Source: Takakia lepidozioides (Eukaryota > Plantae > Bryophyta). Taken from it: 64,000 nt of DNA. The notes under the pieces are model-generated. The model was not told where the DNA came from. It saw only the letters and a list, made by a program, of their open reading frames with translations, and did no database searches. This document shows positions 1-38,070 of the stretch, piece after piece. The DNA lies in contig CM060734.1 of assembly GCA_030704615.1 (NCBI GenBank), forward strand, positions 10,168,001 through 10,232,000, written 5' to 3'. A program made the position numbers and the translations under genes. Numbering within the stretch: position 1 is the stretch's first letter; every line of letters starts with the position of its first letter.

Positions 1-570
1 TTCAGGTTTGTGGGTGCAAGAAATGAAGCAAAGGAGTGATTCTCTTATGGTGAGAGTAGGGCATGTGTGGAGAATGCCTTCAGCCCATTGAGGCTCTTGT
101 TTTCAAGCTTTAGAGAGCTAGAACGGAAGTCTAGGGCTGGTTTCCACTTGGAGTGAAAGAAAAGCACTTGTAGGGCCTATGTGAGTTGGGGTTTCAACTT
201 CAAGCTTGAAGGGAGCGCAACTTTGAAGCAGCAGGTGTAGGGGGCTGGAATAGGCTCTAAGACAGATGCTATGGCCAAGGAGAGTGCTTGAATGAGTGCT
301 CACAAGGGCTGGGAACCAGCAGGGCTTGGTTGTTTGCCATTGAGTTTAGTGGCGTGTTGGGAGGCTAAGTGAGAAAGAAGGCTTGGTTTGTGGCAACCAC
401 CTCATGGCTTAGGGCTACTATGGTGGTGTGTGCCGAAAGAGCAAGAATACCTTGCTGATTTCCTCACAGCCGCCATAGCTCAATGGAAAGAAGCCTAGAG
501 TCCAAGAGACACAAACCTGATTGGCGTGGCTAAACCCTTGGAAGAAATGGCTAAATTGCCAGAGCGGCCA

Positions 571-1250
571 TGGATGGGGCTGTGATGGGCTGTGAGGGGC
601 GTGACAGGCGTGCTAAGGCCTTTGAGGCATATGAGGCTGTGAGGGGCTGTGACAGGCTGTGCCCATGGCCTTTGGGGCTGTGATGGGCTGTGAGGGGCTG
701 TGACAGGTGCCGTGCCTGAAGGCCTTTGAGGCTGTGAGGGGCTGTGAGGGATGTGACAGTGCCTGTGCCTGAGGCCTGTGGGGCTGTGAGGGGCTGTGAG
801 GGGGACTGTGTTGTAGCAACCGTGCCTTGAGGGGCTGTGGTGGCTGTGACGGGCTGTGACAGGCTTGTGTGCCAGTGGCCTGTGGGGCTGTGAAGGGCTG
901 TGACAGGCTGTGGCCCATGGCCTTGGGGCTGTGATGGGCTGTGAGGGGCTGTGACAGGCCGTGCCTGAGGCCTTTGATGCTGTGACGGGGATGTGACGGG
1001 ATGTGACGGGCTGTGCCCATGGCCTTTGGGGCTGTGATGGGCTTGTGAGGGGCCGTGACAGGCCGTGGCTGAGGCTTTGAGGCTGTGCAGGCTGTGAGGG
1101 GCTGTGACAGGCCGTGCTGAGGCCTTTGGGGCTGTGAGGGGCTGTGAGGGCTGTGTCAGGCCGTGCCCTGAGGCCTGTGGGGCTGTGATGTGTGTGTGTG
1201 TTCTGGGCTGTGGACTGTGACGGCTGTGGTGAGCTGTGTGGGCCTGTGCT
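571..1250 (+). repeat. Degenerate G-rich tandem array (GGGCTGTGA-type, about 10-nt units) in the 5' UTR of the element
   Basis: Dozens of ggctgtga/ggctgtgac units. The counterpart in copy 2 is at 52104-52580. Confidence 0.9.
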
Positions 1251-1955
1251 GGTCTGTGGTGGCCCGTGTTGACCTGGGGGCCTGTGCTGACTCGTGGAGG
1301 CACTGGTGGACTGCCTAAGGACTGGCATGTGGTCTGGAAGGCCGAATTTTGAAGCTCGTGGAGGGCGGTTTGAGGAGTATCTTCATGATATTCCCATGGT
1401 CATGCAAGTGAGGGAGAGAGGAGAGGAAGAGTGTTGGGATGAGGGCATGCTGGGGTTAGGCATTGCTTTAGCTTCTCTTCCTCGTAGTTTCCACCCTCTC
1501 ATTAGGCCAAGACCTTTCCGTAGGTGGAGGCAAGAGTCAGTCCGGGTTTGGGCTGGGGTGTCCTTGCAGAGCAACACCGTGGAGTTGTTTTTGGTGTGGG
1601 GGAGTTGTCGTTCTGATTTCTTGTGTTTGGATCCCCTCCATACCTGCATGCTTGACTGTGCGCCATGCTAGTTTTGTGTGGGCGCTTGTTTTATAGGTGA
1701 TTGGTCCGGATTTGATCACCGGCCAGTCCTAGAGCATGCTGTCGATGGTGAGGCTGGGGTGATGACCAGCCAGACCATCATTGTTCTCCTGTGGTGAGGT
1801 TGGAGGTGATGACCAGCCAACCATAGGAGTGCTTGCGGTGGATGCAGGTACAGGTGTAGCTATGTTAGGAACTTAGTATTCCAAACCATAAGCCGCAACA
1901 GGTTCTCTACCCGGTTACCTTGTGGAGAGGGGTTTAGGGACATGTTCATGACCGG

Positions 1956-4900
1956 TTGAGTGTCAACACGGAGGTGCCACTAGTTGCTGGGGACAGTGCC
2001 GGTTCGAGCACTAGCGATACTAGTGGGTACACGAGACGAGGTGTGCGGTTTAGGCCACCTTCACCTCCTGTGTCTTCTACGGAAGGTTCTGATTCGGATT
2101 GTGAATCAGGAGGACTCATACCGGCGGTGCAAGTTGTTTCTTTGCCATTGTTGTGGGACACAATGGAGGAGATGTATGGAGCTACCAAGGGGCCACGAAG
2201 GTACTCTGGGGCGGTGGGCACCATCGAGTTGGATGATTTTATCCAAGAGTTTGATAGTTGGTGTGATTTGCAGCAAATGCGCAATCCACAACTATTTACG
2301 CCTTTCATGGCATGGAAGGGGCTGTTTCAGCACCTTGAGGGGCCGCCTATGGATGATTACCATGAGTTCAGGCGGGGGCATGAGGTTGAGATCGAGGAGT
2401 GGAGGATGTACTGGTCACCCGACTATGTCTCCATCACTAGGGGCACTAGAGCCACGAGGGCAGTGGCTACCTGCCGCTGCACCGGCAGCTTCAGCAAGTA
2501 GCAGTGGGACTGGTGGTACAGTAGCTACGACGTCCACCCAAGCCACTACCGCACCAGCACTAGCACCCGTGCCTGCCTTCAACCCTGTTGTGGAGTTCTT
2601 CGAAGAGTTGAGAGGGAACTACCAAGGGGTGAGGACAGAGAAGTTGCGGAGCTTGCAAGAGTTCCAACGGAAGCCGACCGAGAGCTTGAGGGAGGCTTTC
2701 ACTCGCATGAGGCGCTTGATAAATGTAACCCAAGGGGTTACGGAAGCTCAGGCAGTCCAATTCTGGTATGGGATATTGGACAAGGAGCTGAGGAGAAGGG
2801 TGCGGGATGCAACTCTCCTACAAGCGGCCCAACCCACCTTAGCAAATGTGTTTTTGCTGGCAGAGCGGATAGAGCTCAACATGGTGGAGGAACGAGTGGT
2901 CATGGTGGGATTTGCTAAGGAGACACCACGGGGTAGTGGTGCTCCTAGCCAACCACTACCTCAACGTGCTCAAGGCAACAAGGGGGCTCAGGTGAAGCTC
3001 AGGGAAGGGCAGAGAGGACCTCAGATGCAGGGGTCTCTCCCTTCATTTGCTGGCCAACAACGGGCGGATGTGGTGTGCTGGACATGTGGAGGACCCCATG
3101 TCAAAGGATTGCCAGAGGGAGGCAAAGGGCGGCACATGCACAGCCTGCACAGTTGCAGTGTGGGCATTGTGGCAAGCACGGGCATGGAGAGGCCCAGTGT
3201 TATGGTTTGCATCCTGAGTTGCGCCCAGGCCAGTTCCAAGGGAACAATGGTGGCCGGGGGCGAGGGAGCAGCCCAGAGAGGACGAGGTGGCCAGCCACGG
3301 GCCAAGGGCAAGCTCAACGTGGCCAAGGACGCGGAGGTCAGGGTGTTGACCAAGGCATGGCCAACCGGCTTCAGCAGCTAGAGCAGAGGCTCGCTGCCAT
3401 GGCTACAGCTCAGGTGGTACCGGCTCTAAGGCCGGATGGTCCACCTCCTGCTCCTGAGGGAGGAGATATGGGAGGCATGGGATTCATGTGTGGAGCAGCA
3501 CTACCACTAGTGCAGGTGGAGTCTGCTGCAGCCGTGACTCGAGGAGCAGCACGAGTTCCTGAGCCACGAGGTGCAGAGGTGGAGTTGGATCCACAGCGTG
3601 GGGAGGCAAGCCGTCAGGCTAGGCTTCCTCAGTCATTCACATTGGCGGAGACAGTGTCGACGCCATCCATGGCACCTAGTTCTCGCCCGACTGTTACCGA
3701 GGCGGAGGTTACTATGCCATTGGGGAGAGCTACACGGGTAGCACCACTACCTAGTGTTGCCAAGGCTACGGCAGCTAGTGTGCTGCTAGGAGCGGCCACA
3801 TCTGTGTGCCAGGCTCCATTGTTCTCGCTACCATGATTGCGACGCCGGGGGTAACCAGCTGAGGTGTTCAGGCTGGCAGCTACACTCTGTGAGAGTGGGG
3901 AGGTTACTTCATCTTCTGCGGAGATAGTGGGAGGTGTAGTGCCGGAGGGATCCTCGGATTTGAGGGTCAAGACTGCCACGGCGGCGCCATGGCAAGCTGC
4001 AGCTGCCAGGTTGATGGAGCTGCCAGCTAGGCCAGCCATTGAGCGCGCCATGGTGACACCTGGAGTTGTCATGTTAGACAACCAGGATGGCATTTTCTGT
4101 TTGAGTGGACCGGCAGGCAAGAGGTACCGGCCACTGCGGTCTTGTTGGACTCGGGAGCTCAGCCATTGATGCTGGCAGAGCTGCTATTGCAGGCTTGGGC
4201 CTCACGGAGGCGGATATGGAGCCTTGTCCTTTCCAGATACAGACGTCTCTGGGAGGATCGGAGCAGGCTCGGGGCATGACACGGCGTGAGTTGGCTATCA
4301 GACTACGGCCGGATCACCCTACAGATGGCTCAGTGATGCGAGCCAAGGCCATTGTGACAGACGCAGTCTCATACGATGTCCTGGTTGGTGGGGCAGTGTT
4401 GTACCCCATGGGCTTCACCCTGGATTTTTGGGAGGAGTCAGCTTCCTATAGGCCTGCATGGCAGTCAGGGGAGGGCCGGCGTGTGCAGCTCCCTGTGACG
4501 TTCATAGGAGGAGTTGCGGTTGCCCAGCGAGGCAAGATGCCGACACTAGCAGCATTCACAGCGGCAGTGAGTTGGCCTAGAGAGTTGCTTGAGGGCAATG
4601 CTCATTCAGAGGATGTACCACCTCCGGGAGAGCAGGATGACATGTATGGTATGGCGGAGTTGCCTACCATGGTTGCTCAGACTCCATTGTGGGGCACGAG
4701 CAAGGATTTGCAGCGGGATGCTGATCGACGGTGCAACAAGCCTGGGTGGAGGCTTTTGTACCGTCAGGAGAGGAGGAGAGTGTGGGGATTGCACCAGGAC
4801 CACCTCAATTGTCTCCATTGGACACCACACCTATTGTGTGGCAGTATCCGGATGAAGGCATTTGTCTTCTGGACTTGTTTGGCGGGATCAGCACCGGATT

Positions 4901-6101
4901 GGCTGCTGTGTTACAGGCAGGTGTACGAGTTCGGCGTTACCTGTATGTGGAGAGGGATGAGACTGCACGACGCGTTTCACTTCGCCATGTTGCTCAGTTT
5001 GGTGCAGCGGTACCCTGAGTTGTTGTCGGTGTCTGCAATTCGTGGATATCAGCAGGCCTTGCCAGCAGACATTTCGTTGCTGGGGGCGCAGGATTTGGAG
5101 CGGGTTGGCTCCATTGATCTGGTAGTGGCAGGTTGGCCCTGCCAAGGGCATTCATCAGCCGGGCATGGCAATGGATTGCGAGACTCGAGGTCGGGTCTGT
5201 TTTGGGAGATGGTGCGGGTTTTGCGCCACTTGCAGCTTCATCAAGCTGTATCTCCAGCATACATCTTGGAGAATGTGCCACTGATGGGCGATTCTCGGGC
5301 CAGGGTGATGGCCAGTGTGCATCAAGTCCGGTCGTGGCTTGGGTCAGCAGTGTTGCTAGATGCAGCTACAGTGGGGTCACATCGTCCACGGCTATGGTGG
5401 ACTAACTTGATGCCACCCGCACTGCTCAAGCGTGCATTTGATGGGGTGCAGCGGCCAGCACATCTCACAGTGGATAACATTCTGGACACAGGGAGGCAGT
5501 CTCAGCGTGTGAGACACGATGACCGTTCGCCTTTGGCAGTGGTCAACAAGGTGGGTCAACCACGAGCAGCATTACCTACACTGCTCAGCTTCCCAGGATC
5601 GCATGCTTTCCGGGATAGTGGACCTGGCCTCCTGTGGGATGCTCAGTTGCAGCAGTTAGTGGAGCCTAATGCTGACGAGCGTGAGCGGGCAATGGGTTTT
5701 ACCACTGGTACCACGGCGGTGTCGTCTCTTTCTGAGGCATCACGTCGTCAAGTGTTGGGGCAAGCAATGGATCTCAATTGCTTGACCTGGATTATCAGCT
5801 TGGCTCTGGCTGAGCAACGCAGAGTGCGGAGTACACTTCCTCAATGGTCTCTCTGCCTACCGAGACGGTACAGGCAGTGAGTGGGGGCGAGCATGTGAGG
5901 ACCACGGGGTGCATGCATCCATGGCACACGTGGGAGGTGCTCGAGGTTCAGAGGGAGTTGGCAGCCAAGGCGGCTGTGATGGATGAGGTTGGGGATTCTT
6001 CTCGGGTTGAGGAGGTCCTCAAGGATGAGATGATGGGGCAGGATGAGGCCTTGTCATTGACTGAGCAGGCAGGGAGTACTGCTCAAGAGGTTGCAACATA
6101 G
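1956..6101 (+). pseudogene. ORF1 of copy 1: Gag-aspartic protease-C5 DNA methyltransferase, broken by several frameshifts
   Basis: Pieces 1956-2501, 1984-3381, 3075-3836, 3864-4169, 4105-5880, 4731-5018 and 5844-6101 join into the protein seen in copy 2. CGHCGKHGHGEAQC knuckle; LLDLFGGISTG, AGWPCQG, YILENV, RPRLWWTN, ERERAMGF, RRQVLGQAM. First in-frame ATG at 2163. Confidence 0.9.
4860..5800 (+). other. C5 cytosine methyltransferase domain (DNMT3-like, motifs I-X in linear order), copy 1
   Basis: Motif I FGGISTG, II VERD, IV PCQ (5137-5145), VI ENV, VIII HRPRLWW, IX ERERAMGF, X RRQVLGQA. One frameshift near 5000. Confidence 0.93.
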
Positions 6102-9100
6102 CAACCACGGACGCGTCCTCTACCTCTAAGCCCACTGGACTTAAGGTTGCAGTTACGGAGGACAATTGGGAGCCTGACATTGGACCCATTGTCACCGGAG
6201 GAGAGAGACGACGTATACGGCGGTTCCTGAGGGCTTACAGGAATTGCTTTGCCTTCAGTTTGAAGGACTTGGGAGCACTGAAGGGTCAAGAGATCCGTAT
6301 TGAGTTGGCCACTGACACGCCAATCTTTCGGAGACCCTATAGATACAGTGACATGGAGAGGTCTTTGATTCAGATGAGGACTCAAGATCTCTGGGAGGCA
6401 GGTTTGGTGGAGCTCTCTGGTGGAGAGTATGCTTCAGCCACAGTGATGCCAGCCAAGAAGGATGTCTATGGCAATTGGACGGAGAGACGTATGTGCGGTG
6501 ATTACCGGCCTGTAAATCGTCAGACCAAGTCCGATAAGTATATGCCATGCCAACACCAGAGGAGATCTTTGATGCCATCGGGCATGCTAAGGCCTTTAGC
6601 ACTTTGGATTTACGATCCGGATATCACCAGTTGCCAATCAAGGAGGCGGACAAGCAGAAGACGGCATTCTGGGGGATCAATGAGCACGGCAAGGATTGCC
6701 TATATCAGTGGCGGTTCTTACCATTTGGGCTTAAGAATGCTCCTGCAGAGTTTCAGAGAGTCATGGATAGGATTCTAGCAGGGGTGGACTTTGCTCGGTG
6801 CTACATAGATGACATCATCATCTTTAGTGTTACGATGGAGGAGCATGAGAGACACCTTCAGGTGGTATTGGAGCGCTTGAGAGCGCACGGATTGAAGTTG
6901 CATCCGGGGAAGTGCAAGTTTTTCCACAACCAGATTGAGTATCTGGGTCACATGATATATCCTGGAGGATTGGGGGTACAGCAGACTAAGGTAGAGGCCA
7001 TTGCACAAATTCCACGCCCCACGGATGTGAGCCGAGTTCGAGCTTTCATGGGGTTGGCAAACTATTATAGACGGTTTGTCAAGGGATTTAGTACCATTGC
7101 AAAGGCTCTAACCAAGCTGACCAAGGTGGAGTGGCAGTGGGAAGATGAGCAGGAACGAGCTTTTCAAGAGCTCAAGGCGAGGTTGACCTCGGCGCCTATC
7201 TTGAGACGACCTATCAGGGGGCGTCCCTTTCAGCTGCATACGGATTGGAGCATGCTGGGGCTTGGAGCGGTGCTCACACAGGTGGATGATGAGGGAAGAG
7301 AGTTCGTAGTGGCTTACGCTAGCCGCTCGAACAACGCTGCAGAGGCTAAGTACAGCTCATATGAGGGAGAGTGCTTAGCTGCAGTGTGGGCCGTGGCACA
7401 CTTCAGGTGCTATCTATACGGCAATCTTTTCACCCTTGTCACGGATCACCAGCCACTCAAGTGGTTGATGGAGTCAGACAAGCTTACGGGGAAGCTTGCA
7501 CGGTGGGCACTTATACTCCAGGAGTATGACTTTCAGGTTGTGCATCGACCGGGTTTGGTCAATCGGGATGCGGATGGATTGAGTCGCAATCCATGCATGA
7601 GCCAGCAGGATGACACTGGAGCTCGGTGGCATGGTGAGACGGACGAGGAGATGGTGCCGGGATGGCACGCATCTGCATTTTTGTGTATCTTGGCATCGGA
7701 GGTCAGATTGGACCTACAACAGGGATGACTGTAGACGGAGTGTCTGAGGACCCTGAGGCTAGTGATGAGCTAGGTGGTGCCAGAGATATACATGAGGATT
7801 CGGCTGTGTTGGACTACCTCCGCACGGGACACGGCAGCCATTGTGACTGCCAGGGAGAGGGATCGGATCCTGCAACGAGCCAAGAGGTTCAAGTGGGAGG
7901 GGATACACCTACTTCGAGTGTGGGAGGATGGTCGGGTGAGGATTGTGCCTCACCCCACACAGCGTGCACGGTTAGTGCGGCATGCCCATGAGGAGTTGGG
8001 GCATTTTGGAGTGCGACGCACTCACAGTTTACTGCAGGGGCAGTATTGGTGGCGTGGTATGCATACAGAGGTGCAACAGTTCGTGGCTAGGTGCATGGTG
8101 TGTGACAGGGTGCGTGCTTCATTCAACGCCCCTACACCACAGTTGCATCCTTTACCAATCATGGGATTGGGCTACAGGTGGAGTCTTGACTTCGCAGGAC
8201 CGTTGCCACTGACTATGCGCCACCACAGATATGTGTTGGTGATGGTGGAGCACTTCTCCAAGTGGATTGAGTTGGTTCCATTGCCTGACAAGGCTAGTGA
8301 GGGGGCTGCGTATGCATTCTTGGATCGTGTGCTTAGCCGATTTGGTGCTCCAGCTGAGGTACTCACGGACCAAGGGAGAGAGTTCTTGGGGGAGTTTCAG
8401 GCTTTGTGTGATAAAGCCTTGATAGACCACCGCACCACTTCTCGGGATCATCCTGAGGCCGATGGCTTAGCAGAGAGAGTTGTTCAGACGGTGAAGAGGG
8501 TTTGCGCAAGTATGGCTTGCAGAAGGGACACCTAGGAGATTGGGATCTTCAGGTTCCTTGGTTAGCCATGGGCTACAGGTTCAGCAAACAAGCATCACTT
8601 GCCTCCTTCTCACCATATTTCCTTCTCTTTGGCCGAGAGCCGGATTTGCCTGCAGCCATTCGTAGGGACACTGCTCAAGTCCTTAACCTTGACGATCCGG
8701 ACGTGTGGGTACGTGCATGTGATCAGCGTGCAGAGTTGTTCAAGAAAGTCATGCCCATGGCTTTTGAGAACCTTGCCATTGCACAGCACCGTGATACGTT
8801 GAGGTATGCCACTATACGTGGTGGAGGATATCGTCCTGGGGTTCGGAGGTTTAGCCCTGGTGACTATGTTTATTTGCAGCAGACTGCTCCTACGACTCTG
8901 GATGTTACTGCAGGGCGTGTTATTCTGAGGGTTCGAGAGGTGTTGCCCTCAGGGGTCCTGATCTTGGAGGGTCGGGATGGCATGACTTGGAAGGACCATG
9001 TGCGTAATTGTGCGCCATGTCACCTTCCCAATGTCGATGGCAGAGTTGACCCAAACTTGGCAGTGGTACCTGCAGGTTTGAGGTGCATGCTCTGTGGGTC

Positions 9101-9227
9101 TGCCAAAGGGGCAGCCACCATGCTGGTGTGTGATCGATGCTCAAGGGGTTGGCATATGGGATGCTTGACACCACCTCTTGAGAAGGTTCCTGACGGAGAT
9201 TGGTTGTGTCCACACTGCTTGGGATAG
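6102..9227 (+). pseudogene. ORF2 of copy 1: RT-RNase H-integrase-PHD finger, frameshifted
   Basis: [21 protein letters not shown]; TDWS/ECLA/TDHQPL/DADGLSR; HAHEELGH..CMVC, SLDFAG, TDQGREF, GLAERVV; terminal C4HC3 CMLC..CDRC..HMGC..CPHC. Confidence 0.93.
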
Positions 9228-9467
9228 TGGCAGTGGACATGACTGGAGGCAGCTAACAAGACATGGGAGGCCAAGCTCATAGGAGTCAATACATGAGATC
9301 CCAAGCTCAAGTTCACAGGTTGCAAGACGGCGACTAACGATGGGGCAACTCTTGCACCCGGCCTCTTGATCTATCGAGTTTGAGTGTAGTAGGGATAGTG
9401 GTGGAGGACTTAGTGAGGCTATGGTCACTATCACATCTTGGGACTTAGAGGGACCTAAGCACCAGCT

Positions 9468-9476
9468 AGGGGGGCG
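9468..9476 (+). promoter_or_regulatory. Polypurine tract preceding repeat B1
   Basis: AGGGGGGCG, then AT, then TG. The same context (CAGCTAGGGGGGCGATTG) recurs on the minus strand near 44069-44086 and near 31850-31867. Confidence 0.75.
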
Positions 9477-9478
9477 AT

Positions 9479-10184
9479 TGTGTGGACTAGTGACTGCCAT
9501 AGTGGGCAGCATAGTGGCAGCCTAGTGACTGACTAGTTGTAGCCTAGTGGTTGGACTAGTGGCTGGACTAGTGGTGACTAGTGGTATACTAGTGTGTGTG
9601 TGCACATGTGTTGTGTGGTTTTGGACAGCGATGTAGTTGTGTAGCGATATGTATGCGCACGACAGCTGTCAAGTTATTTTACCACTAGTGTGAAACTAGC
9701 TAGGAAATAGCTAGCTTTTACATATTGACATTTGGGATTGGCCCAAGTGTCAATCCAGGGGTCAAGGCAGATTTAGGCCCTGGAGTGGTTATCTTCACGG
9801 CAAGCGCGGAAGGCTCATCTTTCTCGAGTTGAGCCTCACCGCGCCTAGCTATGGCGCCGTAGTGTGGATTCCCCATGGCGTGGGGTGCACTTGGCTTGAC
9901 TTGTATTTGAGTGATGAGGTTATATATGCATGAGTTTATGCTTCAGCTTTGTGAGCTCGCATGAGCTTGTGCTTGTATTCTTCTTCTTTATCTATTGTGT
10001 GGACTAGTGACTGCCATAGTGGGCAGCATAGTGGCAGCCTAGTGACTGACTAGTTGTAGCCTAGTGGTTGGACTAGTGGCTGGACTAGTGGTGGACTAGT
10101 GGTATACTAGTGTGTGGTGTGCACATGTGTTGTGTGGTTTTTGGACAGCGATGTAGTTGTGTAGCGATATGTATGCGCACGACA
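9479..10184 (+). repeat. Split terminal repeat block: B1 (9479-9664), GC, A2 (9667-about 9993), AT, B2 (9996-10184)
   Basis: B1 and B2 are near-identical direct repeats of about 186 bp, rich in ACTAGT. A2 matches the 5' terminus of copy 2 (53880-54199, minus). Palindrome GACAGCTGTC at 9661-9670. Confidence 0.93.
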
Positions 10185-10236
10185 ACTCTCTCTTCCTCTC
10201 TCGCGCTCTCTCTTTCCTTCTTTCTCTCTCTCTCCT
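10185..10236. repeat. CT-rich microsatellite
   Basis: ctctctcttcctctctcgcgctctctctttcc... directly flanking the element end. Confidence 0.7.
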
Positions 10237-17071: not shown

Positions 17072-19376
17072 CTATCCATGCTCAGTACCCATGATAGCAG
17101 CTCTCAGCTTGACATTGGCATTTTCCTGCAAAAGTACGTAGCCGAGACAACAACAAGATCGTGAATAAGTTACTCATGACAAGCCAACAAGAGCCAGATG
17201 ACGATGACCAACTACTACGACACGTCTGACAAAGCAATCTTTACATTTGGCAGTAAGCCTGCAGAAATTGTTGGGGTGCTTAATATATATATCCACTGCC
17301 TCCTTTAGGGCACCAAAGCTCCGATCCTCCTCAAGATGATACAAGGAACCAAAGCAAACTGCAACAGACGCGGGCAGCAAAAGCCCAGAGGGTGCAAGAA
17401 TATATTGATGAACTAATAACGAAGTCATTGAGTCAGCAGAAGGGAGAGTCTGAAAGCCTACCAGGGCAAAAAATAAGGTACACATGGGCAAACTAATGCA
17501 ATTCTGCACTAGAGAAGGTGAATACGAAGGTACTCACCAAATGCATTAGGACTCGAAATCATACTTATCAGTGACCAGGATACCCCCAGTTAACTGAATA
17601 CTTTCAAGGCAAATAGATATTCCCACATTACAAAATCGTGCCTGACTTTCCTGCATAATCTTCCAAGGAATGTCCCAGCAATCCTTGGCACAAAGCATTC
17701 CCTGGTTAGTGGCTGAGATACCAGGACAGCATACACATGTTCATGTGATGCTCATTCTGAAGGTGCAATTCAGGTCTGGGGCCTCACCTATTATAGACCC
17801 CAACACTGGCACCATGTCGTACATAATAGTTTAGGTGTCTCAAGCTAGGAACCTAGGTGTGCTTAAAAGTTCCTCCAGATTTTGACTACATATTCTATTA
17901 AATTATGGCCTGGCCTCATTGAGATTTGAAAGATATCCTGGTATCAAGAGACAAGGATGCATTCCCAAGAAAGATTCTCCATATCAGAAAGTGAACACTG
18001 CATGCTACTTGGGAACGATAACAACAAGAGAGGAGAAAACACACCTGCTCAGCAAGAGCATCAGAGCTTTCACAGACTTGCTTTGCCAGAGCTTCAAGTT
18101 TCATTAGCATTTTAGTGTATAAATCTTCAAGTTCCCGCACATGCCCACCCTTGCCTTCAGTTCTAATCATGCCCCTTAATCTGTCAACTGAAAAATCCTG
18201 TGAGTACATATTCAAAAGCGCTTGCTCCGTGACTCCTGGCCTTCCACCACCTTCCACGCTTACATCTGAAAGAGCATCCTTGCCGTGAGCTCTTCTTAAA
18301 CCCTCACCGGTTGTTTCAGTGCCTTCAGTCCCTTCCATATCTGAGGGGTTCAAGAACCATGGAAACGGTGCAACTGGGGAAAATGAGTCGTACAGCGCTC
18401 GAAATGCAGGACCAATGTTTACAATGTTTAGTGTCCTAGGCTCAAAAATCCCCCCTCCCTGCGCTTTATCACGGTACTGGAATGCACGATACTCATGGGT
18501 GTAGGTCGAATTTATTGCGTACTCTGAGATTAGTAAAAACACACACGGGGAGGTGGAGGGCACTCCAACGAGCTTCAGAATAAGCCCCCCTTCATGAGAG
18601 ATACCACTGCTACTTCCCTTTACAGAGCTCCCTGGCACTTTGGTGTGTACAAAGCCTCCCGGTGAAACAATACCCCCACTCCCACTCCCACTGCTGCTTT
18701 CTCTGGATGGGAAATTTCCAACTACCTTGGCGTTTGCACTGGAAGAGGTAACACCCCCATCTCTGGAGAGACTGATTCTGGTCTGCATGGGACCCTTTCC
18801 CAAATTAGGGATCCCAGTGGCATCAACAATTCCCACTCCCTCTGTACCTCGAGTTTTTGAAGGAAGACGGTTGGTTTCTTTTGAAACATTGCCAGGACCA
18901 CTCCCTTCAATAGTGGCCATACCTCCACTTGCATTACAAGGCGGCAAATAATGAGTTGCCATTCTCAAATTGATGGTCACAGATGTTTCCCTCATCGAAG
19001 GCCTCATTGTAGTCTCCCGCCTACCAACAAACCAGCCGATGGGAGAATCGCCGCCTCTGTCTTCCCTCTCTCCAATCATCTGAAAAAGCTTTGAAGGATC
19101 GATCTGACCTGTTGCATCATAGAAACTCATAACTCTGCCCGTGCAGCAGTGACCAGTCACGCTTGCTGTGAACTCTTCACACTCACTTTGAGCTCCCACT
19201 ACCTCATCATCACCTAGAGTGGACGAGGTTTGGCGTTGCACATGGCCGAATAAGATGCCATCACAATCACCCTCAGAGGAGCTGAAGGCCTGCATTATCT
19301 GTGATAAAGTCGCTCCTGAGATAGCCACTCTGTCACATGCAGGGTCCGCCTCTACTGCAGGCTTCCCCGATGCCAT
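17072..19376 (-). CDS. Abraxas/ABRO1 (FAM175)-like BRISC/BRCA1-A complex subunit; predicted exons 19376-18045 and 17125-17072
   Basis: N-terminal MPN-like segment VAISGATLSQIMQAFSSSEGDCDGILFGHV, PIGWFVGRR..RPSMRE, THEYRAFQY and a C-terminal coiled coil. Donor GAGCAG|GTGTGT at 18045. Acceptor TTTTGCAG|GAA at 17125 gives ENANVKLRAAIMGTEHG*. Confidence 0.78.
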
Positions 19377-21423
19377 GCTCCGTATCTCCTGAGAGACCGC
19401 CTGTTTCCCCTCTCCGTATCTCTCTCCCCACCCCCTCCCCTTCCGTGTTTGTCAGAAATGTCTTCTTACTGCAAACCCATAGAAACTCCCTGGGTGCCAC
19501 AAACCCATATCTCAGAAACACATAAAGCTCTACTGACTATCCGTGCACAGACCTGCTGCACAAAAGGAAAAGCACAGGAGATGAGCTTGCACACAGACAT
19601 GGAGGGGAGCAATAAACAGCAGTAGCCTTTGTGGGCCCTTTGTCTTCTCATCACTCTGGCACTTCTCATCCATCTCTCTCACTCATTCATCCTGTGTCCT
19701 CTATGCAGATTTTAGAGCAGACAGTTGAAGTCAGCCCACATTTATTGATGAAAACCTGTACAGCTTTATTTACAGGAAACATGAGGTATTTGAGCATATG
19801 ATAGAAAAACCCCAAAACCTGGGAAAGAACAAAGAAGGGAGGAAAGGGAAGCAAGCTAAACTAAACTATTCAAACTTCTCAGTCATCCCAACCTACTGCT
19901 TGAAGTAGGTTGGAGGGCAACATGGGTGTAACGTCTGGGAGAGTTGGGAGGTGGGATGAAGCCAATCCAGCTATGTCTGTCCGATGTAAAATGGCCATTG
20001 CTTGAGCTCCGATGTAAAATGGCCATTGCTTGAGCTCTGTGTAATGCAAAGGCCACTTTTTGTCTGTAAAAGGCCACAAGAACGGAGGCATAAGGAATCC
20101 ATGTGGTCTTGTTTTGGCCCGCTTCATTGGCACATGAACGGAGTAGGTTGTCAAACTGGCGATGGAGATAGCCGAATATCTCTACAGCCAAGAATAGAGC
20201 CCACCCTCCAAAGGGGGCAATACCCACATGGGGAAGAGGCTCTTATTTACGCTAGCTTCGGCTGGCGTCATATATATATATATATACAGCCAAGGGGATG
20301 AAAGTGTCGGTGGGATGTCTGTCCCGATAGTCGGGTTCCTTGACTTAGAGCATCCCCACTCTACACCTCTATGGACCCCTGCACCCGTACTTCTCGTATA
20401 GAGGTTCAAAATTGCCGCCAAACGTACCACACCCTTGCCCCGCTACAGTATACGCCGTTCAGGGCGGGCAGTGAACCGCCTCTCTTTCACTGAATCTGTG
20501 CACGATATTCAGTCCCTGTACTCGTCCCTGACCCGAGTTGTCCCCACATGGACATGTCAGAGCGTGCCTCTCAGCCTCTGGCCTCCCTTCCAGCGGAAGA
20601 CAAGAGCTGCGACACGGGGATGACGCAGGCAAGCAGTAGGTGGGGAACGTGATAAGGAGCATTGAGAACGTCACTCTCTGGGAACATAGGGTACCAGGGG
20701 CGTAACGAGGGGCAAGGGTGTGCTATGAGCAGCCGACCCCTTCACACACCTTTCCAGACTCCTGAACCAACCCCTCCAAATCAGTGAGAAGGGTGGGGAT
20801 GCTCTTAGAGCAACAACCAAAGTCGCAGAGCCCTGAGAGGATGCCGAACGTGAAAGTAGGTCGGATCGGGTAGGGTAGAGTAGGCTCGGGTCGGCAATGA
20901 CAACGTAGGCTAGGGTGCGAAGACCATCTTTAGACAGGATGACATTTATTAAGAGACCCTCACCGGCGAGCGATTCTATCGATAAGTTATATTACATTAC
21001 CGCTCGCCAAAGCCGAGGAGGAGAAGGATAGCACAGATTGTGGGTGCTTGCTGTGGTTGTGTCGTCTCGCTTATACAATACGGTTTTTCTTTCTAGCGAT
21101 CTGCAATGGGATGTGGGCGATCTGTTCCTAGCATACTTTAGTCTGCCCTGATGGGATAGTTAATTCTAAGGATGTGGGTGCTTTTCCCTGTGTGCGACTG
21201 TCCCAGCCAACCTAGGGTTATGCTGGTACAGAGTTGAGTGTTCAATGCAAGTCTTTCTGGCACCAATTCTTTTGTAAGCAACATCGGGGAGTTGTACGAT
21301 GTTGGAGTGCCCGACCATGTGTCCACAACGGACTCTTTGGTTGGCCTTTGTCCCAACGGATTGCCCATCTGTCTATCTCCATCATTGATTTCTTGACAAT
21401 CCCTGTTACCTTCTCTGTTTCTA

Positions 21424-22650
21424 ATGGATCCACTATCTCTGATTGCATTCCTTCCAGCTTCTCCTCCATCATCGTGTGAAACTCCTCATGAACTGGAGTT
21501 TTGTGTCTCCACCAGCATGGATGAACGAGTGTGGAGTAGATTATCGCAGGAGCTCCTAGAGAGAATTTTGGCGGCAACGCCTGCCCCTAGCATCCTTCGC
21601 CTTCGCTCTGTCTGCAAGGGGTGGAACTCTCTCTTCGCCTCGCAGAAATTCATCGAGCTGTGGTTGCAACACTTCAAATCTCACAGGCCCTGCTTTCTCA
21701 TGACTGCGTTCGTCGTTCGGGATAGTGTGGGTTTTTCATTCTATAACCCAGCTTTGAATTTATGGCACCAAATGCTGATGCCAAAATTTGTCTGGGGCGA
21801 AGGTCAGAATGTGAATAATCTCACTTCATCTATACCTGGACTCGTAGCATCTGATGGAGGATTGCTTCTCTTAGGAGTTGGGGCTTTGCAAATGCCACAT
21901 GCTTATGTTGTGTGTAACCCCATGACATCCACATGGAAACTCTTGCCTCGCATGGTGCAAGCCACTGGACGGCAGTCGTTCATCCGAATGGGAACAGATT
22001 CAAAGAGATACAAGATAATCATGGCATGCAATGAGAGTGATGCATCAGATTCGACCACAAAGGTGTACGACTCCTCCACCGACTGTTGGATGGTTTATGA
22101 TAGCGCCCTCCCCCCTACCATCACCGCCATGGATTACCAGCAATCCGGTGTTGTTTGCAGTGGATATTTGTATTTGGTGGCAAAGGATCCTGCCATGGTG
22201 GTAGCATTTGACCTCGAGCATGGGGTCTGGAGCGAGATCCAACCACGAATACCGGATCGCATCATTCGCCCACATCTTGTTGAACGGCATGGTCAATTGA
22301 TGATTGTGGGGGGTGTTGATAACATATGGACTCACAGCAGATGGCCCAACCCTCAAAGTATTGGTGTGTGGAAGCTGGATCAGTCACTACAAGCGTGGGT
22401 TGAAGTGGCGAGGCTGCCTAAAGTCCTGTGCGAAGAATTTCAAAAGTGGATTAATTTTGAGAACTTCAGGTGCGTAGGCCAACATGACATTCTTTATCTT
22501 ACCTGCACTAGTGGCCGAGATGTACTGGCCTACGACATCTCCAAGAAAACGTGTAAATGGTTGCCCGAGTCGCCCAGACTTGTTGACCACCATGGTCGAC
22601 CCTGGTGGATGCTGTTGCCATATGAGCCCTCGCTGACTCCCTCAATTTGA
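21424..22650 (+). CDS. F-box/kelch-repeat (FBA-type) protein, intronless; alternative start at 21517
   Basis: F-box MDERVWSRLSQELLERILA..LRLRSVCKGWNSL, followed by beta-propeller motifs (VASDGGLL, VVCNPMTSTWKLLP, TKVYDSSTDCW, VVAFDLEHGVW). Confidence 0.9.
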   Translation: MDPLSLIAFLPASPPSSCETPHELEFCVSTSMDERVWSRLSQELLERILAATPAPSILRLRSVCKGWNSLFASQKFIELWLQHFKSHRPCFLMTAFVVRDSVGFSFYNPALNLWHQMLMPKFVWGEGQNVNNLTSSIPGLVASDGGLLLLGVGALQMPHAYVVCNPMTSTWKLLPRMVQATGRQSFIRMGTDSKRYKIIMACNESDASDSTTKVYDSSTDCWMVYDSALPPTITAMDYQQSGVVCSGYLYLVAKDPAMVVAFDLEHGVWSEIQPRIPDRIIRPHLVERHGQLMIVGGVDNIWTHSRWPNPQSIGVWKLDQSLQAWVEVARLPKVLCEEFQKWINFENFRCVGQHDILYLTCTSGRDVLAYDISKKTCKWLPESPRLVDHHGRPWWMLLPYEPSLTPSI

Positions 22651-25218
22651 CAACAATATCTGTCTTGATATCTCTCAAGTTGTACATTTCATGTTTATGA
22701 TCTCTGATGAAGATTTGGGACATAATTCAGCACTGCTAATACCCTACTAAGCTGTCTGCTTCATATTCTAATTCAAATCTTAGATAAGTATGGTTTTGGT
22801 CTTCTTTTGCAACTCACATGCAAACCCCTCTTTCTTGGGCAACTTGAAGGCTCTCAACCTATGTATGGTTCCAATGGTCTTGAGACTAACCTTCATCAAC
22901 ACTTGACTAGATGTTGGTACAAAGGAAGACCAAACTGTCTCTTCAGATGTTCATTTCTGCCTGTGTTCTGGTAGTGGCAAGTTATTTAGGCATTGTGGGA
23001 ATACTCCTAAGAAGAGCGTCAAATCACATTGTGTGGTTGTCCTGTGGTACACTACAGTAAAATTCCAGTATGTGCTGTCTCTACATCTAAGAGAGGATGT
23101 TGAGGGCTGCATAGTGGATGCAATGACTGTATCTTGGGAATCCAATTTACAGACAACAGCTGGCAATATTCTCTTGGTGAGAGGTGTAAGCAGCAGGGAG
23201 AGCCAGCACTACATGTGCTCAAGTATCCATAGACTCAAGTTCTATTACCTTTTGCCTGTCCCGGGGATGAAAAAGAGGTGTTGAAATGTGGCAGTTGCTC
23301 ATTTAGCAGGGTTGATGTTGGTATCCGGTCCCAATGATCTCTGTTCAGTGTCGATGAAGGCAAAGATGAGGTCAGCATTCTTCCAGTGGTGTTTGATATT
23401 CCTTCCTACCTGACTTTTTTTGTGAGTGGATCTTGGACAGCCAGATTTTTGGGTCTTGGTCTTCATTGTTAGTTTTGGTTCTCCTCAATTGCAAGGATTT
23501 CATGCAGAGAGGTGAGGATTTAATGGCAGTATTTGCTTCAGTGGTATGGACGATCTTTACAGTTGCAATCACAGGCACCTATCAGGATCTTGGTGCAGGT
23601 CTGTTTAGCTTTCAGATTTCAATCCTGTCACGGTGTCATGATCAGACATGCTGAAGTTCTCAGCTCCAGTGCTAGATGTTTCTAGAACCTTCAGGTGCCA
23701 TATACAAATTGTATTGAAATTGACAAGTGTGTTGTCTCTACCTCTCTTATCATGAACTCATAACTTTTGCAGCTGATAGATGTACCCCTTATCACCTCCT
23801 TGAAGATCTCTGAAACTCATCAACAGTAGGAAACCTTTCATCCAGCGCATTGTACTAGTTTAGTCGTGCAAATGCCTTGCACTCGCATCTTACCTTCACT
23901 AGAGTTCCAACCAATAGTACCTTTTGAGTAAACTTGGAGTTGCCTTGAGTGGGCAGCCCAGTGGTTGGGTGTTTATGCTCTTAATCAGGTGGTCCTGGGT
24001 TCTACTCTCAGTAAAGACACAACCGTCCATTGGCCCCTCGAGGGGCTGTGCATGGAGCTGCATGCTCTGTGTAAATTGTGGACATGAAACTTCCTTTCCT
24101 TTCCCAAGGGAAGTAAGGGTCTAGCCAGTTTGAAACCAGCAGATTAGTTACCAACATGGTCAACATATTCTGCGTAAACCTGAGGGACAACATTTCTAGA
24201 TGTTGACTCATGTGCAGTCTGAGCTTGTGAACGGGAGTTTCTGAGAGGATATTAGCATTTGGTTTTACCTATTTTTCATGCAAACAACAGAAAGGCGAGG
24301 TTCCATTGCTCAGCAGGAACTTTTTGATGTCCTTTTCAAAAAATTGTGTTTCTAACTGATGGCCTGGGGTTTAGCTACTATGATGGTAGTGGAAATGTAT
24401 ATTGATCAGGGGAAGGGAGATTGCTGCGCCCATCCTAGGTTCTGGGTGGGTTCATAGAAGTGTGGACTGTAGTCATTGAGCCACAAAAATGTTTACAGCT
24501 GTCTCTCTCATCAGGTTAGTAATACAGAAATTTCTCATAATTAGTTGAGCATATGACCAAGATCACATGATACTAGAAATTCAGGTTTGATACTCAGTGT
24601 GACAGACTTTCCATGAAGATGTTTTTTTGGGTGTAATGGACGTATAGAAGAAATGAACTTGATCAAGGTGTAGAATGATGAAGCTTGCTTCTTTGACAAC
24701 GGATCTTGGTGTATAATTAAACCCCAACATGCCAGTCTAACTGTAAAGGGGTTTGATGAACATGCCTCATGATAGTTTTCTAATTTCTCTGTGGTAACCA
24801 ACTTTTCTTTCCTTGCACTAGACCAGCATCCTCATCTTCACAACCCTCTCTGAGAGGAAGGATCGACCAAAAGCCCTCTACTTTCCAAGTAAGGGTTAAG
24901 AGTCTTCTGTAGCAAGAAAAAATTGTGTGAATGCTGAGATCCCCTTGCCAGGAGGTGTTCTCTCTCTAATTTGAAGTGTCCCTGTCTCCAGCTACAAATT
25001 TGGAACGATTGAAGTGCAAAAGCCCGATGTTTTGAGCCAAGGAACTAAATTTTTGTCATGTTACACATACTTCTACATTCCAACATTGCTCACACGAGGC
25101 AGGGAAAAACCCTGTTCATGGCAGCTTCAATGACTGCTCTAAAGCACCTTGTTGGCCTGGAGAAGTACTGTCTCCAAATCCTGAAGTGTTCTGTGTCCCA
25201 CAATACTTGAGACATTTT

Positions 25219-26567
25219 CTAATTGCTGAGGGAAGTGTTCTCTGAGAATGTATCATCATAAGTCCACATCTGGTCGTGGACATCCACTGATGGCTGACCT
25301 AGCACACCATCTAGACTTGGGAATTCATGTTGTAGAAAATCCGTTTGCCATCCCTCTTCCATTGAAGGGGAGAAGCTCTGGTTGGACCCTGACGTGCTAT
25401 CAGTATCATCATCAACATTTCGAGGCGGGTCTAAGGAATCCAAGTGCTCCAAGAAATTCTGAATATCACTGTGTTTACTGGGGTTCTCTCCCGTTTTCAG
25501 TTGGTGATTCTCATGCTTTTCTACCAACTCCACCTTGCCTAATGTTCTGGAGGCTGAAGAAATATTGTGATGGTATGCAACTTCCAAACCTCTGCTCATG
25601 CTGCTCCCGGGCTGGTACCTGCTCTCTTGAGGAGATTGAAGTAAACCTTTGGCTGCATATGATCCAGAAATTGAGGAGGCTGGATCTTCATTGTAAGCAA
25701 GATACTCTTCAACTTGCAGCTTACCAGCCAATGCTGCTGGTGCTGACCAATCATGTTTAATCATCATTTTGGAGTCTGAGCGAGAGAGAGAGGCAGTCCC
25801 TGCTACAACATGCTGGGCCCCAAAGTCATGATTTGCATTCAGAATCTGATTCTGACTGGCTTGATAAGGGCCTGGCTTGCTGCTGCCATTGAGAGTTGAC
25901 ATTTCCAGAGACATGAGGTCCAAGCCCATGAGCTGGGTATCTCCAATTTCCATGGAGGACCTTCCATGATCAAACAAGGTAGTACCACTAGACACACCAA
26001 ACGAGGCAGCTGCAATTTCGCTTGCTGATGAGAGGGGAAAGAAAGTAGCACCTGGAAAATTATTCAATGGGTTGTAAGCAGGTATTGCTTCAACGACAGG
26101 AAGATTGATTGGTGCATCGCCGGACACTGAAGGCTGAGCAGAAGTATCGCAACTCCTCGGACTGTGGGGCAACTCAGGACGAGTAGTGGGTTTCCAGTCA
26201 GGCAGATTGATGTGTGCGTGCTCTCCATAAAGCTTGCGAGCAGCAACATCGTAGGCCAACGCAGCGTCCTCCGCAGTAGCAAAAGATCCCAGCCATAATC
26301 GGGTACGCTTCTTAGGCTCTCTGATTTCAGCTACCCACTTTCCCCAGGTTCTCTGACGCACTCCCCGGAACTCGCAAGTAGCATTCTGAGGGCCCCCTTT
26401 CCCTCTCATCGACCCTTTCTTCCATCCTCTGCCCGGTTTCCTTGGGCTTTTCTCTATCACCTTCGTGGGACTTGAGCGGTCGTCTTGGTTTGGTATTTGC
26501 ATCGTCGGTTGTATTTGTGCGTGTTTGTCACTCTCACTCTCTTTCTGCGCTGTCCTCTTCAATTCAC
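25219..26567 (-). CDS. DREB2-type (group A-2) AP2/ERF transcription factor, main exon; first exon or start not resolved
   Basis: [13 protein letters not shown] motif followed by AP2 domain [45 protein letters not shown]; acidic C-terminus. Probable acceptor TGTGCAG| at 26568. Confidence 0.9.
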
Positions 26568-29369: not shown

Positions 29370-30450
29370 CCATAACTAGGGTAGGCTGTGCCGTTGGCCC
29401 AAGTGTCCAGTGATTTAAGTGTAATCCCCTATGTATCAGTGAGTCTCCTATGTCGAGGCCCATGTGTGAAGAATTGAAATCTAAGACCAAGTGCAATTTC
29501 CTATGTATCCAAGTGCGTCTCCTATGTTAAGGCCCATATAAACCCAAGTGTAATCTCCTATGTATCCAAATGTTTCTCCCACGTAGAGGCCCAAGTGCAA
29601 CCTCTAGTGTCTAGTGACATCTAAGTCCAAGTGTCAAGGACGAGAACATGACTGAACACAAACAAGAGATAAAACTAGAGGTACAATGCTAGACAAGAAG
29701 TCAAGGTCGGCGTGGCCGAATGCACGATAAGTAAATATGAATCAAGACGATCTTTATAACAATGAACAAGAGTACAAGATATTGGAACACGACTTGAATA
29801 CTGGAATGCTGGAAACTGGACTGGAGTACCAGATACTGGAAACTGGGCTAGAGTATTGGGAATTGGACTGGAGTACTGGAAACTGGAAACAAAAGTAGCT
29901 TGAACTGGTGTTGGCGAGACTGAAGAGTGTCCAGTCTCGCCTCCTATATATATTGGCTACTAAGAAGCTTCCCCAAAAAGCTGCCCCTATGGAGGTTTCT
30001 TGCTGGAGAAGTTTCCAAGATTAAACAAAGGTTTCTTGATGGAAAAGCTTCCTTAAACAAATGAGGTATCTTGATGGAGAAGTTTTCTCCAAAGGAAGCT
30101 TCCTGAGTAGTTTCCCAAGTTACTCTTGGTAATTTGGTAAACTCTCGGTAACTTGGTAAGTAATGATAAATCATGGTAGATCATGGTAAATCACGGTAAG
30201 TCATGGTAATTTTTGGTAACATGGTAACTTGATAACTTCTGGTATTTACTCCTGGTAAGTTCTTCTGGGCTATGTCCGTGACACCAAGTGCAGAGACCCT
30301 CCTGTTTGGGAGATGTAGGCCTAGGGTAGCATGTGCCGTTGGCCCAAGTGTCTAGTGTCATCTAAGTCCAAGTACAATCCCCTATATATCCAGAGACCCT
30401 TATGTTTGGAGATCCAGGCCTAGGGTAGCCTATGCCATCGGCCTATGTGT
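29370..30450. repeat. Degenerate tandem repeat (CCAAGTG..CTCCTATG..GGCCC units) interrupted by a solo LTR
   Basis: Recurrent ggcccaagtgtc/ctcctatgt/atccaag motifs on both sides of 29632-30283. Confidence 0.6.
29632..30283 (-). mobile_element. Solo LTR (652 bp) with 5-bp TSD CCAAG
   Basis: TGTCAAGGAC...GTCCGTGACA termini; CCAAG at 29627-29631 and 30284-30288; internal TATA run and short tandem repeats. Strand is tentative. Confidence 0.85.
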
Positions 30451-30463
30451 GAAGAATTGAAAC

Positions 30464-36870: not shown

Positions 36871-38070
36871 TGGTCCATGTCTCTGCTGTGGTCCGCAAGC
36901 GAGCCATCATGGCATTCTCTCAAGAGACCATCTCTAAGCCCTCCCTTCAGCACGTAGACCTCCCTGCAGGAAGCGTAAATAAGAGTCTGGACTCTGCCTT
37001 CCTGGCGCTTTTGCTTATACCGAAGCAGTCCTTTATGCAAGTGGAATTGCGACTTAATCCCCAGCCTCAAGTCCCGCAATATCGACGTCGCGAACTCATC
37101 CTTCCAATAAGCCTTCCAAATTTTCCTCTGCAACTTTGTCTTGCCCTCGTACACCAACATGAGTTGCTGCTTTCTACTCAGAGCATCGGCCACCACATTG
37201 TCCCGTCCCGGTTTGTACTGGATATCCACATCGAACACTGCCAAAGTGTCTTGCCACCTAATTTGTTTTGGGGACAACTTAGGCTGTGTGGCAAAATACT
37301 TCACCGTGACATTGTCCGTGAACACCTTCACCAGGTTGGAACCAACATAGTGGCGCCAAAGCTCAAGGCAATGCACCACCGCCTTCATTTCTTTCTCATG
37401 CGTAGGCCACCGTCGCTCCACTTCATTCAGCTTCTTACTTTCGTAAGCCACTGGACGTCCATCTTGCATCAGCACACCCCCAATGGCGAAGTTTGACGCA
37501 TCCGTGTGAATCTCAAATGGACGGTCGAACTCCGGGATGTTCAAGACTGGAGCTTCCGCCATCCACTGCTTTAACTCGGCAAAAGCTTGGCCACAAAAAA
37601 ATGTTTCATATCCATACCTTGGACTTACATAGAAGGTCTGACAGCGGCCCCGCGATCTTGGCAAAATTTCTCACATACTTTTGGTAGTAGGAGGCGAGTC
37701 ACAGAAAAGATCGCACTCCCAGGACCGAGGTTGGAGGTTCCCAGTCCAAGATCGTCCTCACCTTTTTGTCATCCATTTTGATCCCATCCTGTGTAATCAC
37801 ATGTCCTAGGAACTCCACTTTCGTGACCCCGAATTCGCACTTTGAAGCTTTGGCATACAGCTTCTCTTCCCGCAATTTCTGGAACACCTTTTTGAGGTGC
37901 TCCAGGTGGTCTTCCTTCATTTTTGAGTACACCAAGATGTTGATGTACACGATCACAAAGTCATCCAACCACTCATAAAAGAGGCAGTTCATCAGCGTGC
38001 TAAAGGTTGTTGGCGCGTTGTTGAACCCAAAAAGCATCACCAAATATTCGTATGAGCCATACCTTGTCCT

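Follow-up and report, generated by a model that had tools for sequence, protein, structure and literature searches.

Integrated ends at an LTR-internal palindrome in a split-repeat Ty3/gypsy retrotransposon family of Takakia lepidozioides

Introduction

Split direct repeats of the form A1...B1-A2-B2 are the classical arrangement in PAT, TOC1 and Ngaro-type retroelements (PMC5890265). These elements encode a tyrosine recombinase and have no target duplication, and their repeats imply a joined or circular complementary DNA (cDNA). A 64,000-nucleotide stretch of the bryophyte Takakia lepidozioides (GenBank assembly GCA_030704615.1, contig CM060734.1, positions 10,168,001 to 10,232,000 of the forward strand; hereafter the window) contains a Ty3/gypsy-type element, copy 1, whose 3' tail has the same split repeats with the same implication for the cDNA. 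In contrast to the PAT, TOC1 and Ngaro-type elements, it encodes an HHCC-DDE integrase and no recombinase, and 4-bp duplications accompany insertion. Here A denotes the repeat unit that begins with TGTC and B the unit that ends with GACA.

The closest described element is KnitGypsy-Dnmt3 of Klebsormidium nitens, for which the legend of Fig. 4c in de Mendoza et al. (2018, PMC5890265) states a DIRS-like repeat arrangement with Gypsy domains. A Dnmt3-like methylase within the Gypsy pol is common to both, and two K. nitens contigs share the order PPT-B-GACA GC TGTC-A-B (PPT, polypurine tract). In contrast, the present family resides in a bryophyte genome and has relatives in mosses and liverworts, and its A and B cannot be aligned with those of K. 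nitens, the 10-bp palindrome excepted. The K. nitens paper (PMC5890265) treats the family as an acquisition of that species and describes no ends, duplications, palindrome, priming site or mechanism. An initial annotation of the window knew of no described element that works this way; the figure legend already gives the layout. Beyond that legend, no other description of the layout and no published mechanism were found in the open-access literature, and the surveys of the Chlamyvir and Tcn1 clades mention neither PHD-finger elements nor split repeats. The 'LTR subparts' of Chlamydomonas Gypsy-7a_cRei were considered as the same layout and rejected, the term denoting the long terminal repeat (LTR) section of a library entry for an element with ordinary LTRs.

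Individual features have parallels in other systems. As in Tf1/sushi elements and the plant Tcn1 chromoviruses (Tcn1 self-priming, PMC6317226), the primer-binding site (PBS) is the complement of a stretch within the LTR itself and not of a tRNA. Tf1/sushi and Tcn1 have ordinary paired LTRs and a chromodomain, whereas the Takakia element has permuted repeats and a PHD finger, and its self-priming is putative. Retroviral integrases cleave palindromic LTR-LTR junctions (PMC1905944, PMC1180852), and a comparable situation is found in prototype foamy virus (PFV) and human immunodeficiency virus type 1 (HIV-1), where the integrase cuts the internal palindrome of two ends placed together in the two-LTR junction. 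The retroviral palindrome arises only by joining of LTR tips, as a side route, whereas that of the present family lies inside every LTR and is the sole site used. In the circle or dimer junctions of the IS3 and IS30 families, two ends positioned 2-3 bp apart form the active substrate of a DDE enzyme. These are DNA transposons without reverse transcription, and their resemblance to a split-repeat gypsy element is functional only.

Results

Structure of the copy 1 tail

The 3' tail of copy 1 has the order PPT-B1-GC-A2-B2 (Table 1), as the initial annotation had described with coordinates that differ by a few bases. The DNA 3' of B2 is unrelated and CT-rich, and its first bases are ACTC. B1 and B2 are 98.4% identical, and A2 is 96% identical to the 5' A of a second copy in the window (copy 2) and 91% identical to the A of an older one (copy 4). 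The 10-bp palindrome at the B1/A2 joint (GACAGCTGTC) has two matches in the 64 kb, compared with 0.15 expected, and both are located at B/A joints (9661-9670 in copy 1 and 31761-31770 in a second, divergent family, family 2). The element is integrated through the two halves of this palindrome, TGTC at the start of A and GACA at the end of B, and not through the tips of the LTR; the palindrome lies within its U3 region. This assignment, together with the 4-bp target duplications described below, upholds what had been claimed from the window.

The joints of copy 1 were compared with assembled contigs of public sequencing runs (Logan). The B-GC-A joint is spanned by a contig of an independent plant-metagenome run, X5 (9622-9709), and the A/B joint (9994/9995) is crossed by short-read contigs of runs X1 and X12. 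Independent contigs thus bridge both joints, which excludes an assembly artefact. In several short-read contigs the match starts exactly at TGTC (9667) and is preceded by differing upstream sequences, and one contig runs on from the end of A into the PBS. The short-read contigs point to very high repetition of the family in this organism, contig depth not being equivalent to copy number.

Reverse-transcription LTR, self-priming and the A/B joint

In every lineage B directly follows the PPT, and A is directly followed by the PBS. On this ground A-B, which had been considered as the true LTR for its TG...CA ends, was rejected. The 15-17 nt that follow the 5' A have a perfect complement within A, at about 147-180, and three distinct pairs of this kind occur in three lineages (Table 1). 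The covarying PBS and mid-A segments support Tf1-like self-priming, in which R would start in mid-A. With that start, U3-R-U5 corresponds to B-GC-A, the reverse-transcription LTR that the initial annotation had proposed and that the positions of the PPT and the putative self-priming PBS favor.

One metagenome locus (L035; JGI metagenome contig Ga0209611_10009954, 3230-3900) has the tail PPT-B-AACA GC TGTC-A-PBS followed by an inverted first half of A, with GACA at the flank. This arrangement resembles an integrated plus-strand strong-stop DNA whose end had snapped back onto the primer segment before cleavage at the palindrome, and it provides independent support for B-GC-A as the reverse-transcription LTR.

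The joint between A and the terminal B is exact in four lineages. In family 2, A ends with TTATCA and B2 begins with TTGTGG, at the base right after the PPT, and the joint in Sphagnum shows the same precision. The K. nitens B2 also starts with the first base 3' of the PPT, the A end there not being defined by a PBS. The joint of copy 1 shows a small indel compared with the A end of copy 2, and one further locus (L018, 2660-2700) contains a 19-nt filler between the end of A and the start of B2 in an otherwise normal B-NN-A-B tail, which is what imprecise end joining would leave. The A/B joint behaves as an end-to-end join of the U5 tip of a complete cDNA to the U3 tip. An exact U5/U3 joint is what joined cDNA ends would give, in keeping with the suggestion in the initial annotation that the joint is an old circle junction. 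Because B2 lies outside the inferred transcript, the joint would have to be made anew in each cycle.

Distribution and census of the layout

Proteins closely related to the integrase-PHD protein occur in Sphagnum, in the liverworts Calypogeia, Riccia and Marchantia, in Haematococcus and in Klebsormidium nitens, those of K. nitens being 54-56% identical to the window protein. By these relatives alone, the window would most probably be assigned to a liverwort-like bryophyte. Contigs of the relatives were found by exact protein look-up, and metagenome contigs were scanned with an alignment of 14 integrases, which added 80 further loci. The arrangement PPT-B-GACA GC TGTC-A-B-flank was seen in two K. 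nitens contigs, one ENA assembly and one Sphagnum fallax chromosome. The S. fallax copy is complete: between two ATCT duplications it has A, a PBS, an internal part of 8 kb and PPT-B-GC-A-B. The integrated product has the order TSD-A-PBS-internal-PPT-B-GC-A/B-TSD (TSD, target-site duplication), and the split-repeat layout is a property of the whole lineage.

Two kinds of 3' end predominate. B-NN-A-B ends are present at about 26 census loci and at two in the window, and ends consisting of B alone, with GACA at unique flanking DNA, at about 17 census loci and in copy 2; the latter account for about 40% of the 3' ends. The spacer between GACA and TGTC is invariably 2 bp in both window families, K. 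nitens, Sphagnum, the ENA assembly and about 25 independent metagenome loci. It reads GC in well-kept copies and AC, GT, AT or AA in old ones, mostly through C-to-T decay. All 15 of the 5' ends consist of A alone; within the window this is seen in copies 2 and 4, in agreement with the initial annotation. Full-length A was encountered 54 times, 15 times at 5' ends, 38 times inside B-NN-A-B blocks and once in the L035 snap-back; this tally includes loci sampled twice, and five borderline cases among the 38 were inspected. The reciprocal form, in which A would have B upstream and internal sequence downstream, was found at none of the 15 5' ends and in none of the 54 full-length occurrences of A.

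Target duplications of 4 bp were seen at five of six full copies in other genomes and accompany eight insertions in all. Five surround the A...B-NN-A-B form (ATCT, AAGG, CATA, ATGT and GCAT/ACAT), CCAA flanks a B-only copy (L070), and the remaining two are ATAC of copy 2 and TCCT of a rearranged mini-copy in the window. The initial annotation had named conventional copies, a variable spacer and an assembly artefact as observations that would speak against it; the census yielded no conventional copy, the spacer does not vary, and the block is no artefact.

Three loci examined as examples of the layout were set aside. Haematococcus lacustris L002 has no recognisable B/A block and shows a large inverted duplication after the PHD finger, Marchantia polymorpha L004 retains just a B-like remnant (70% identical), and the tail of Calypogeia fissa L006 is interrupted by another young repeat. 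Loci L007 and L008 have the tail PPT-B-AACA GC TGTC-A, after which B2 was looked for and not found. In the metagenome copy L008 (2160-2175), GC stands directly before the TGTC of the 5' A (flank ...CCAAGC), either by chance (1 in 16) or as a spacer kept at that end.

Coding content

Copies 1 and 2 are 97.2% identical over 8.2 kb (copy 1 positions 1448-9663). Pfam searches of their long open reading frames (ORFs) gave the order gag, protease region, C5 methylase, RVT_1 with RNase H, Integrase_H2C2 with rve, and a C-terminal PHD finger, and collinearity in tblastn comparisons agrees with this order across copies. The protease match is weak (Asp_protease_2, E 0.017). The C5 cytosine methylase domain (PF00145, E 7e-13) is located between protease and reverse transcriptase (RT), and its Dnmt3 subtype is putative. 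The translated integrase contains H-x4-H, C-x2-C, D99, D159 and E195, and these HHCC/DDE residues are invariant across the 14-sequence alignment except for the first H. The solved structures closest to this integrase are those of Ty3 and PFV.

No Phage_integrase match was obtained for any long ORF, the downstream long ORFs of copy 2 all being assigned or unannotated. The 5' 2 kb of copy 2 (52142-54199), where a recombinase could hide, contains no minus-strand ORF of at least 100 amino acids, and the gene calls in the Sphagnum and metagenome loci are likewise without a tyrosine recombinase. The domain searches thus bear out the initial claim of an intact HHCC/DDE integrase without a tyrosine recombinase. 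The reading frames of both copies are broken by frameshifts or stops, in copy 1 in several places. An exact-protein look-up with a copy 1 ORF, aimed at the DNA 5' of the window, gave no match.

Tandem arrays of a unit of about 10 nt (GGGCTGTGA and variants) occupy the 5' untranslated region (575-1250 in copy 1 and 52086-52592 in copy 2). The two copies share only 79% identity in this region, compared with 97% elsewhere, and the region therefore evolves fast.

Other copies in the window

Copy 2 has the form A-PBS-internal-PPT-B and is nested in the older copy 4. The empty site of its insertion can be reconstructed from copy 1, in which window positions 61-507 match 54666-54206 and 508-604 match 43883-43786; the sequence that copy 2 interrupts is continuous in copy 1 and in copy 2 itself. 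Copy 4 also starts with A alone (TGTC at 55805), beside unrelated DNA. Family 2 is represented by a tail. Its B and most of its A are barely alignable with those of family 1, to which copy 1 belongs, whereas PPT, palindrome and layout are shared. The layout being common to both families, a one-off rearrangement is excluded.

The mini-copy at 38071-38409 had been read as a plain A-B form. Its TGTC and GACA ends and its TCCT duplication stand; the A-B reading does not, the distal half of A being inverted exactly at the primer segment and B being 5'-truncated to its last 70 nt. It interrupts the RT gene of another element between residues 135 and 148. The mini-copy resembles the L035 snap-back and may be another aberrant priming product.

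Two copies of an unrelated gypsy element, whose RT is about 32-35% identical to that of the split-repeat family, are present at 30446-31312 (+) and 37090-38800 (-). Each carries a split-repeat insertion, the first the family 2 tail and the second the mini-copy. A third RT-integrase-PHD copy, 80% identical, extends over 34761-36870 (+) and stops about 230 bp before the expected PPT, with no recognisable B or A behind it. The host ORFs between the elements (17916-26562 and 41190-42310) encode MPN/Abraxas-like, F-box/Kelch and AP2-domain proteins and a PPR repeat array, which confirms that the DNA is plant nuclear.

Table 1 Features of the split-repeat elements in the window and of the self-complementary pairs of the lineage.
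Feature	Position	Strand	Remarks
Copy 1, internal part	1-9467	+	5' end about 1 kb before the window; tandem array, gag, protease region, Dnmt3-like methylase, RT/RNase H, integrase-PHD
Copy 1, methylase	4105-5880	+	
Copy 1, PPT	9468-9477	+	AGGGGGGCGA; directly 5' of B1; same tract before B in copy 2, family 2, Sphagnum and metagenome loci
Copy 1, B1	9478-9664	+	5' part of U3 of the reverse-transcription LTR; starts TTGTG, ends CGACA; 98.4% identical to B of copy 2
Copy 1, palindrome GACA-GC-TGTC	9661-9670	+	two integration half-sites end to end, 2-bp spacer
Copy 1, GC spacer	9665-9666	+	between B1 and A2
Copy 1, A2	9667-9994	+	rest of U3 plus R and U5; starts TGTC
Copy 1, primer-like segment in A2	9813-9829	+	GCTCATCTTTCTCGAGT; complementary to PBS position
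Copy 1, B2	9995-10184	+	terminal B repeat, joined straight to the A end (U5/U3 joint); ends CGACA at host flank
Copy 1, ACTC flank	10185-10188	+	expected 3' copy of the target duplication, by inference from eight other insertions; 5' partner outside the window
Family 2, tail	31862-31313	-	in the RT gene of an unrelated gypsy element
Family 2, PPT	31862-31853	-	
Family 2, B1	31852-31767	-	86 nt
Family 2, GC spacer	31766-31765	-	
Family 2, A	31764-31399	-	366 nt, ends TTATCA
Family 2, B2	31398-31313	-	
Rearranged mini-copy	38071-38409	+	TGTC and GACA ends; TCCT duplication at 38067-38070 and 38410-38413
Copy 2	54199-43883	-	A-PBS-internal-PPT-B; nested in copy 4
Copy 2, A	54199-53880	-	5' flank unrelated, ends ATAC
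Copy 2, PBS	53880-53864	-	
Copy 2, gag	51599-50664	-	
Copy 2, protease region	50716-48851	-	
Copy 2, methylase	48832-47465	-	
Copy 2, RT/RNase H	47305-45584	-	
Copy 2, integrase-PHD	45665-44316	-	
Copy 2, PPT	44081-44072	-	
Copy 2, B	44071-43883	-	followed by flank
Copy 2, target duplication ATAC	54203-54200 and 43882-43879	-	readable as GATAC if the last B base is counted as target
Copy 4, 5' part	55805-54200	-	older; A' 55805-55501, decayed PBS, 5' region; split by copy 2, resumes at 43882 downwards
Self-complementary pair, window family			segment in A GCTCATCTTTCTCGAGT; PBS position ACTCGAGAAAGATGAGC
Self-complementary pair, Sphagnum type			segment in A AACATAGTTCTTTGAGT; PBS position is the exact complement
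Self-complementary pair, third type			segment in A AGTTTTTCTAGAATT; PBS position is the exact complement

Discussion

The element has the domain order of Ty3/gypsy elements, with a methylase inserted before the RT, an HHCC/DDE integrase, and TG...CA ends with a short target duplication. It lacks the two identical direct LTRs of that group, its 5' end being A only and its 3' end B-NN-A-B or B only. Of the features of the DIRS order it shows the split direct repeats and neither the tyrosine recombinase nor the absence of target duplication. It shares with KnitGypsy-Dnmt3 the C5 methylase domain within pol, the Gypsy domains and the DIRS-like repeats. We estimate a probability of roughly 60% that the copy 1 tail belongs to an old streptophyte Ty3/gypsy lineage of the KnitGypsy-Dnmt3 type that integrates a permuted form of a joined cDNA.

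By this route, reverse transcription would be conventional and self-primed, from an RNA that starts in mid-A and ends in A2, and would yield a cDNA whose LTR is B-GC-A. The U5 end of the full-length cDNA would then be joined to the U3 start, in a two-LTR circle or by an equivalent end joining. The integrase would cut after each CA of the palindrome in the PBS-proximal LTR, leaving recessed CA-3'OH ends and 2-nt GC 5' overhangs, a geometry that would be that of a normally processed retroviral end. Insertion of the permuted molecule with a 4-bp stagger would generate the A...B-GC-A/B form, which would retain the terminal redundancy (A...A) required for the next round. B-only copies such as copy 2, and the A/B minis, probably arise later, most simply through B1 x B2 or A1 x A2 recombination.

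Several points weigh against this proposal. The circle, the cDNA ends and the transcript start of the joined-cDNA route are hypothetical. Two-LTR circles are a minor, dead-end species in retroviruses. The opening of a circle at the palindrome, as put forward in the initial annotation, fits the products and is plausible. It also predicts the reciprocal A/B-GC-A...B form equally often, which the census did not reveal. A closed two-LTR circle contains two identical palindromes, but no reciprocal product was found, so that plain circle opening needs an added directional rule. Two of the eight full-length census copies (L069 and L077) have no recognisable duplication. Finally, the broken reading frames of copies 1 and 2 leave activity in this genome hypothetical.

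The directional problem might be eased in a route without a free circle, which we regard as unlikely overall, if worth serious attention. Here the integrase would cut linear cDNA at the left-LTR palindrome and insert both new ends while they are kept in one complex. The cut would produce a 190-bp B fragment and a long A...B-GC-A fragment, and the host would seal the blunt U5 and U3 tips during or after integration; alternatively, the reverse transcriptase might make the U5/U3 joint by an end-to-end template switch as the last plus-strand step. The product, the exact or filler-bearing A/B joint and the duplications would be the same. In addition, the two LTRs differ in timing because of the order in which reverse transcription proceeds, an asymmetry that could explain the sole use of the PBS-proximal palindrome (0/15 reciprocal 5' ends). 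No integrase is known to bring two unlinked pieces of DNA into a single integration, which counts against this route. Either a directional rule exists or the route involves no free circle, and the sequence is compatible with both.

It is improbable that the different end types reflect three substrates, with two-LTR circles giving A...B-GC-A-B, one-LTR circles giving A...B, and double cuts giving A-B. All the end types are indeed present in the window (copy 1 and family 2; copy 2; the mini-copy at 38071-38409), and the B-only form, at about 40% of census 3' ends, keeps its 4-bp duplications (CCAA in L070, ATAC in copy 2). However, B1 x B2 or A1 x A2 recombination of one primary form yields identical products with the same duplications, much as solo LTRs arise, so that the three forms do not attest three kinds of circle as had been argued in the initial annotation. 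The mini-copy is rearranged and is no clean A-B, and the missing reciprocal form is left unexplained. An element of the DIRS/PAT tyrosine-recombinase type, or an ordinary LTR element altered through nesting, tandem rearrangement or misassembly, is already refuted despite the textbook repeat layout, by the domain content (no recombinase domain, intact DDE integrase), the 4-bp duplications and a census in which the layout is common to two window families and independent assemblies of three other organisms, while contigs from other runs span both joints.

New in the present analysis are the census across species, the uniform spacer length of 2 bp, the covariation of the primer site, the L035 snap-back and the absence of the reciprocal form. 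Returning to the joined-cDNA route, we consider it an evenly balanced proposition that a whole ancient lineage with a DDE integrase, spanning charophyte algae, mosses and liverworts, follows a hitherto undescribed integration route in which the junction is encoded within the LTR and only the PBS-proximal one is opened. The census constrains any model of this process, as just one of two equivalent palindromes is ever opened. Paired-LTR finders and dating by LTR divergence will misread or miss such a split-repeat family, which the short-read contigs suggest to be highly repeated in this organism. If the proposition for the lineage is true, a retrovirus-type integrase can use recognition sites internal to the LTR, with a joined-end substrate as its normal route, which bears on how integrases choose their ends. 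Split direct repeats would then be a signature of junction-based integration whatever the enzyme, and the finding bears on the origin of the split repeats in tyrosine-recombinase retroelements.

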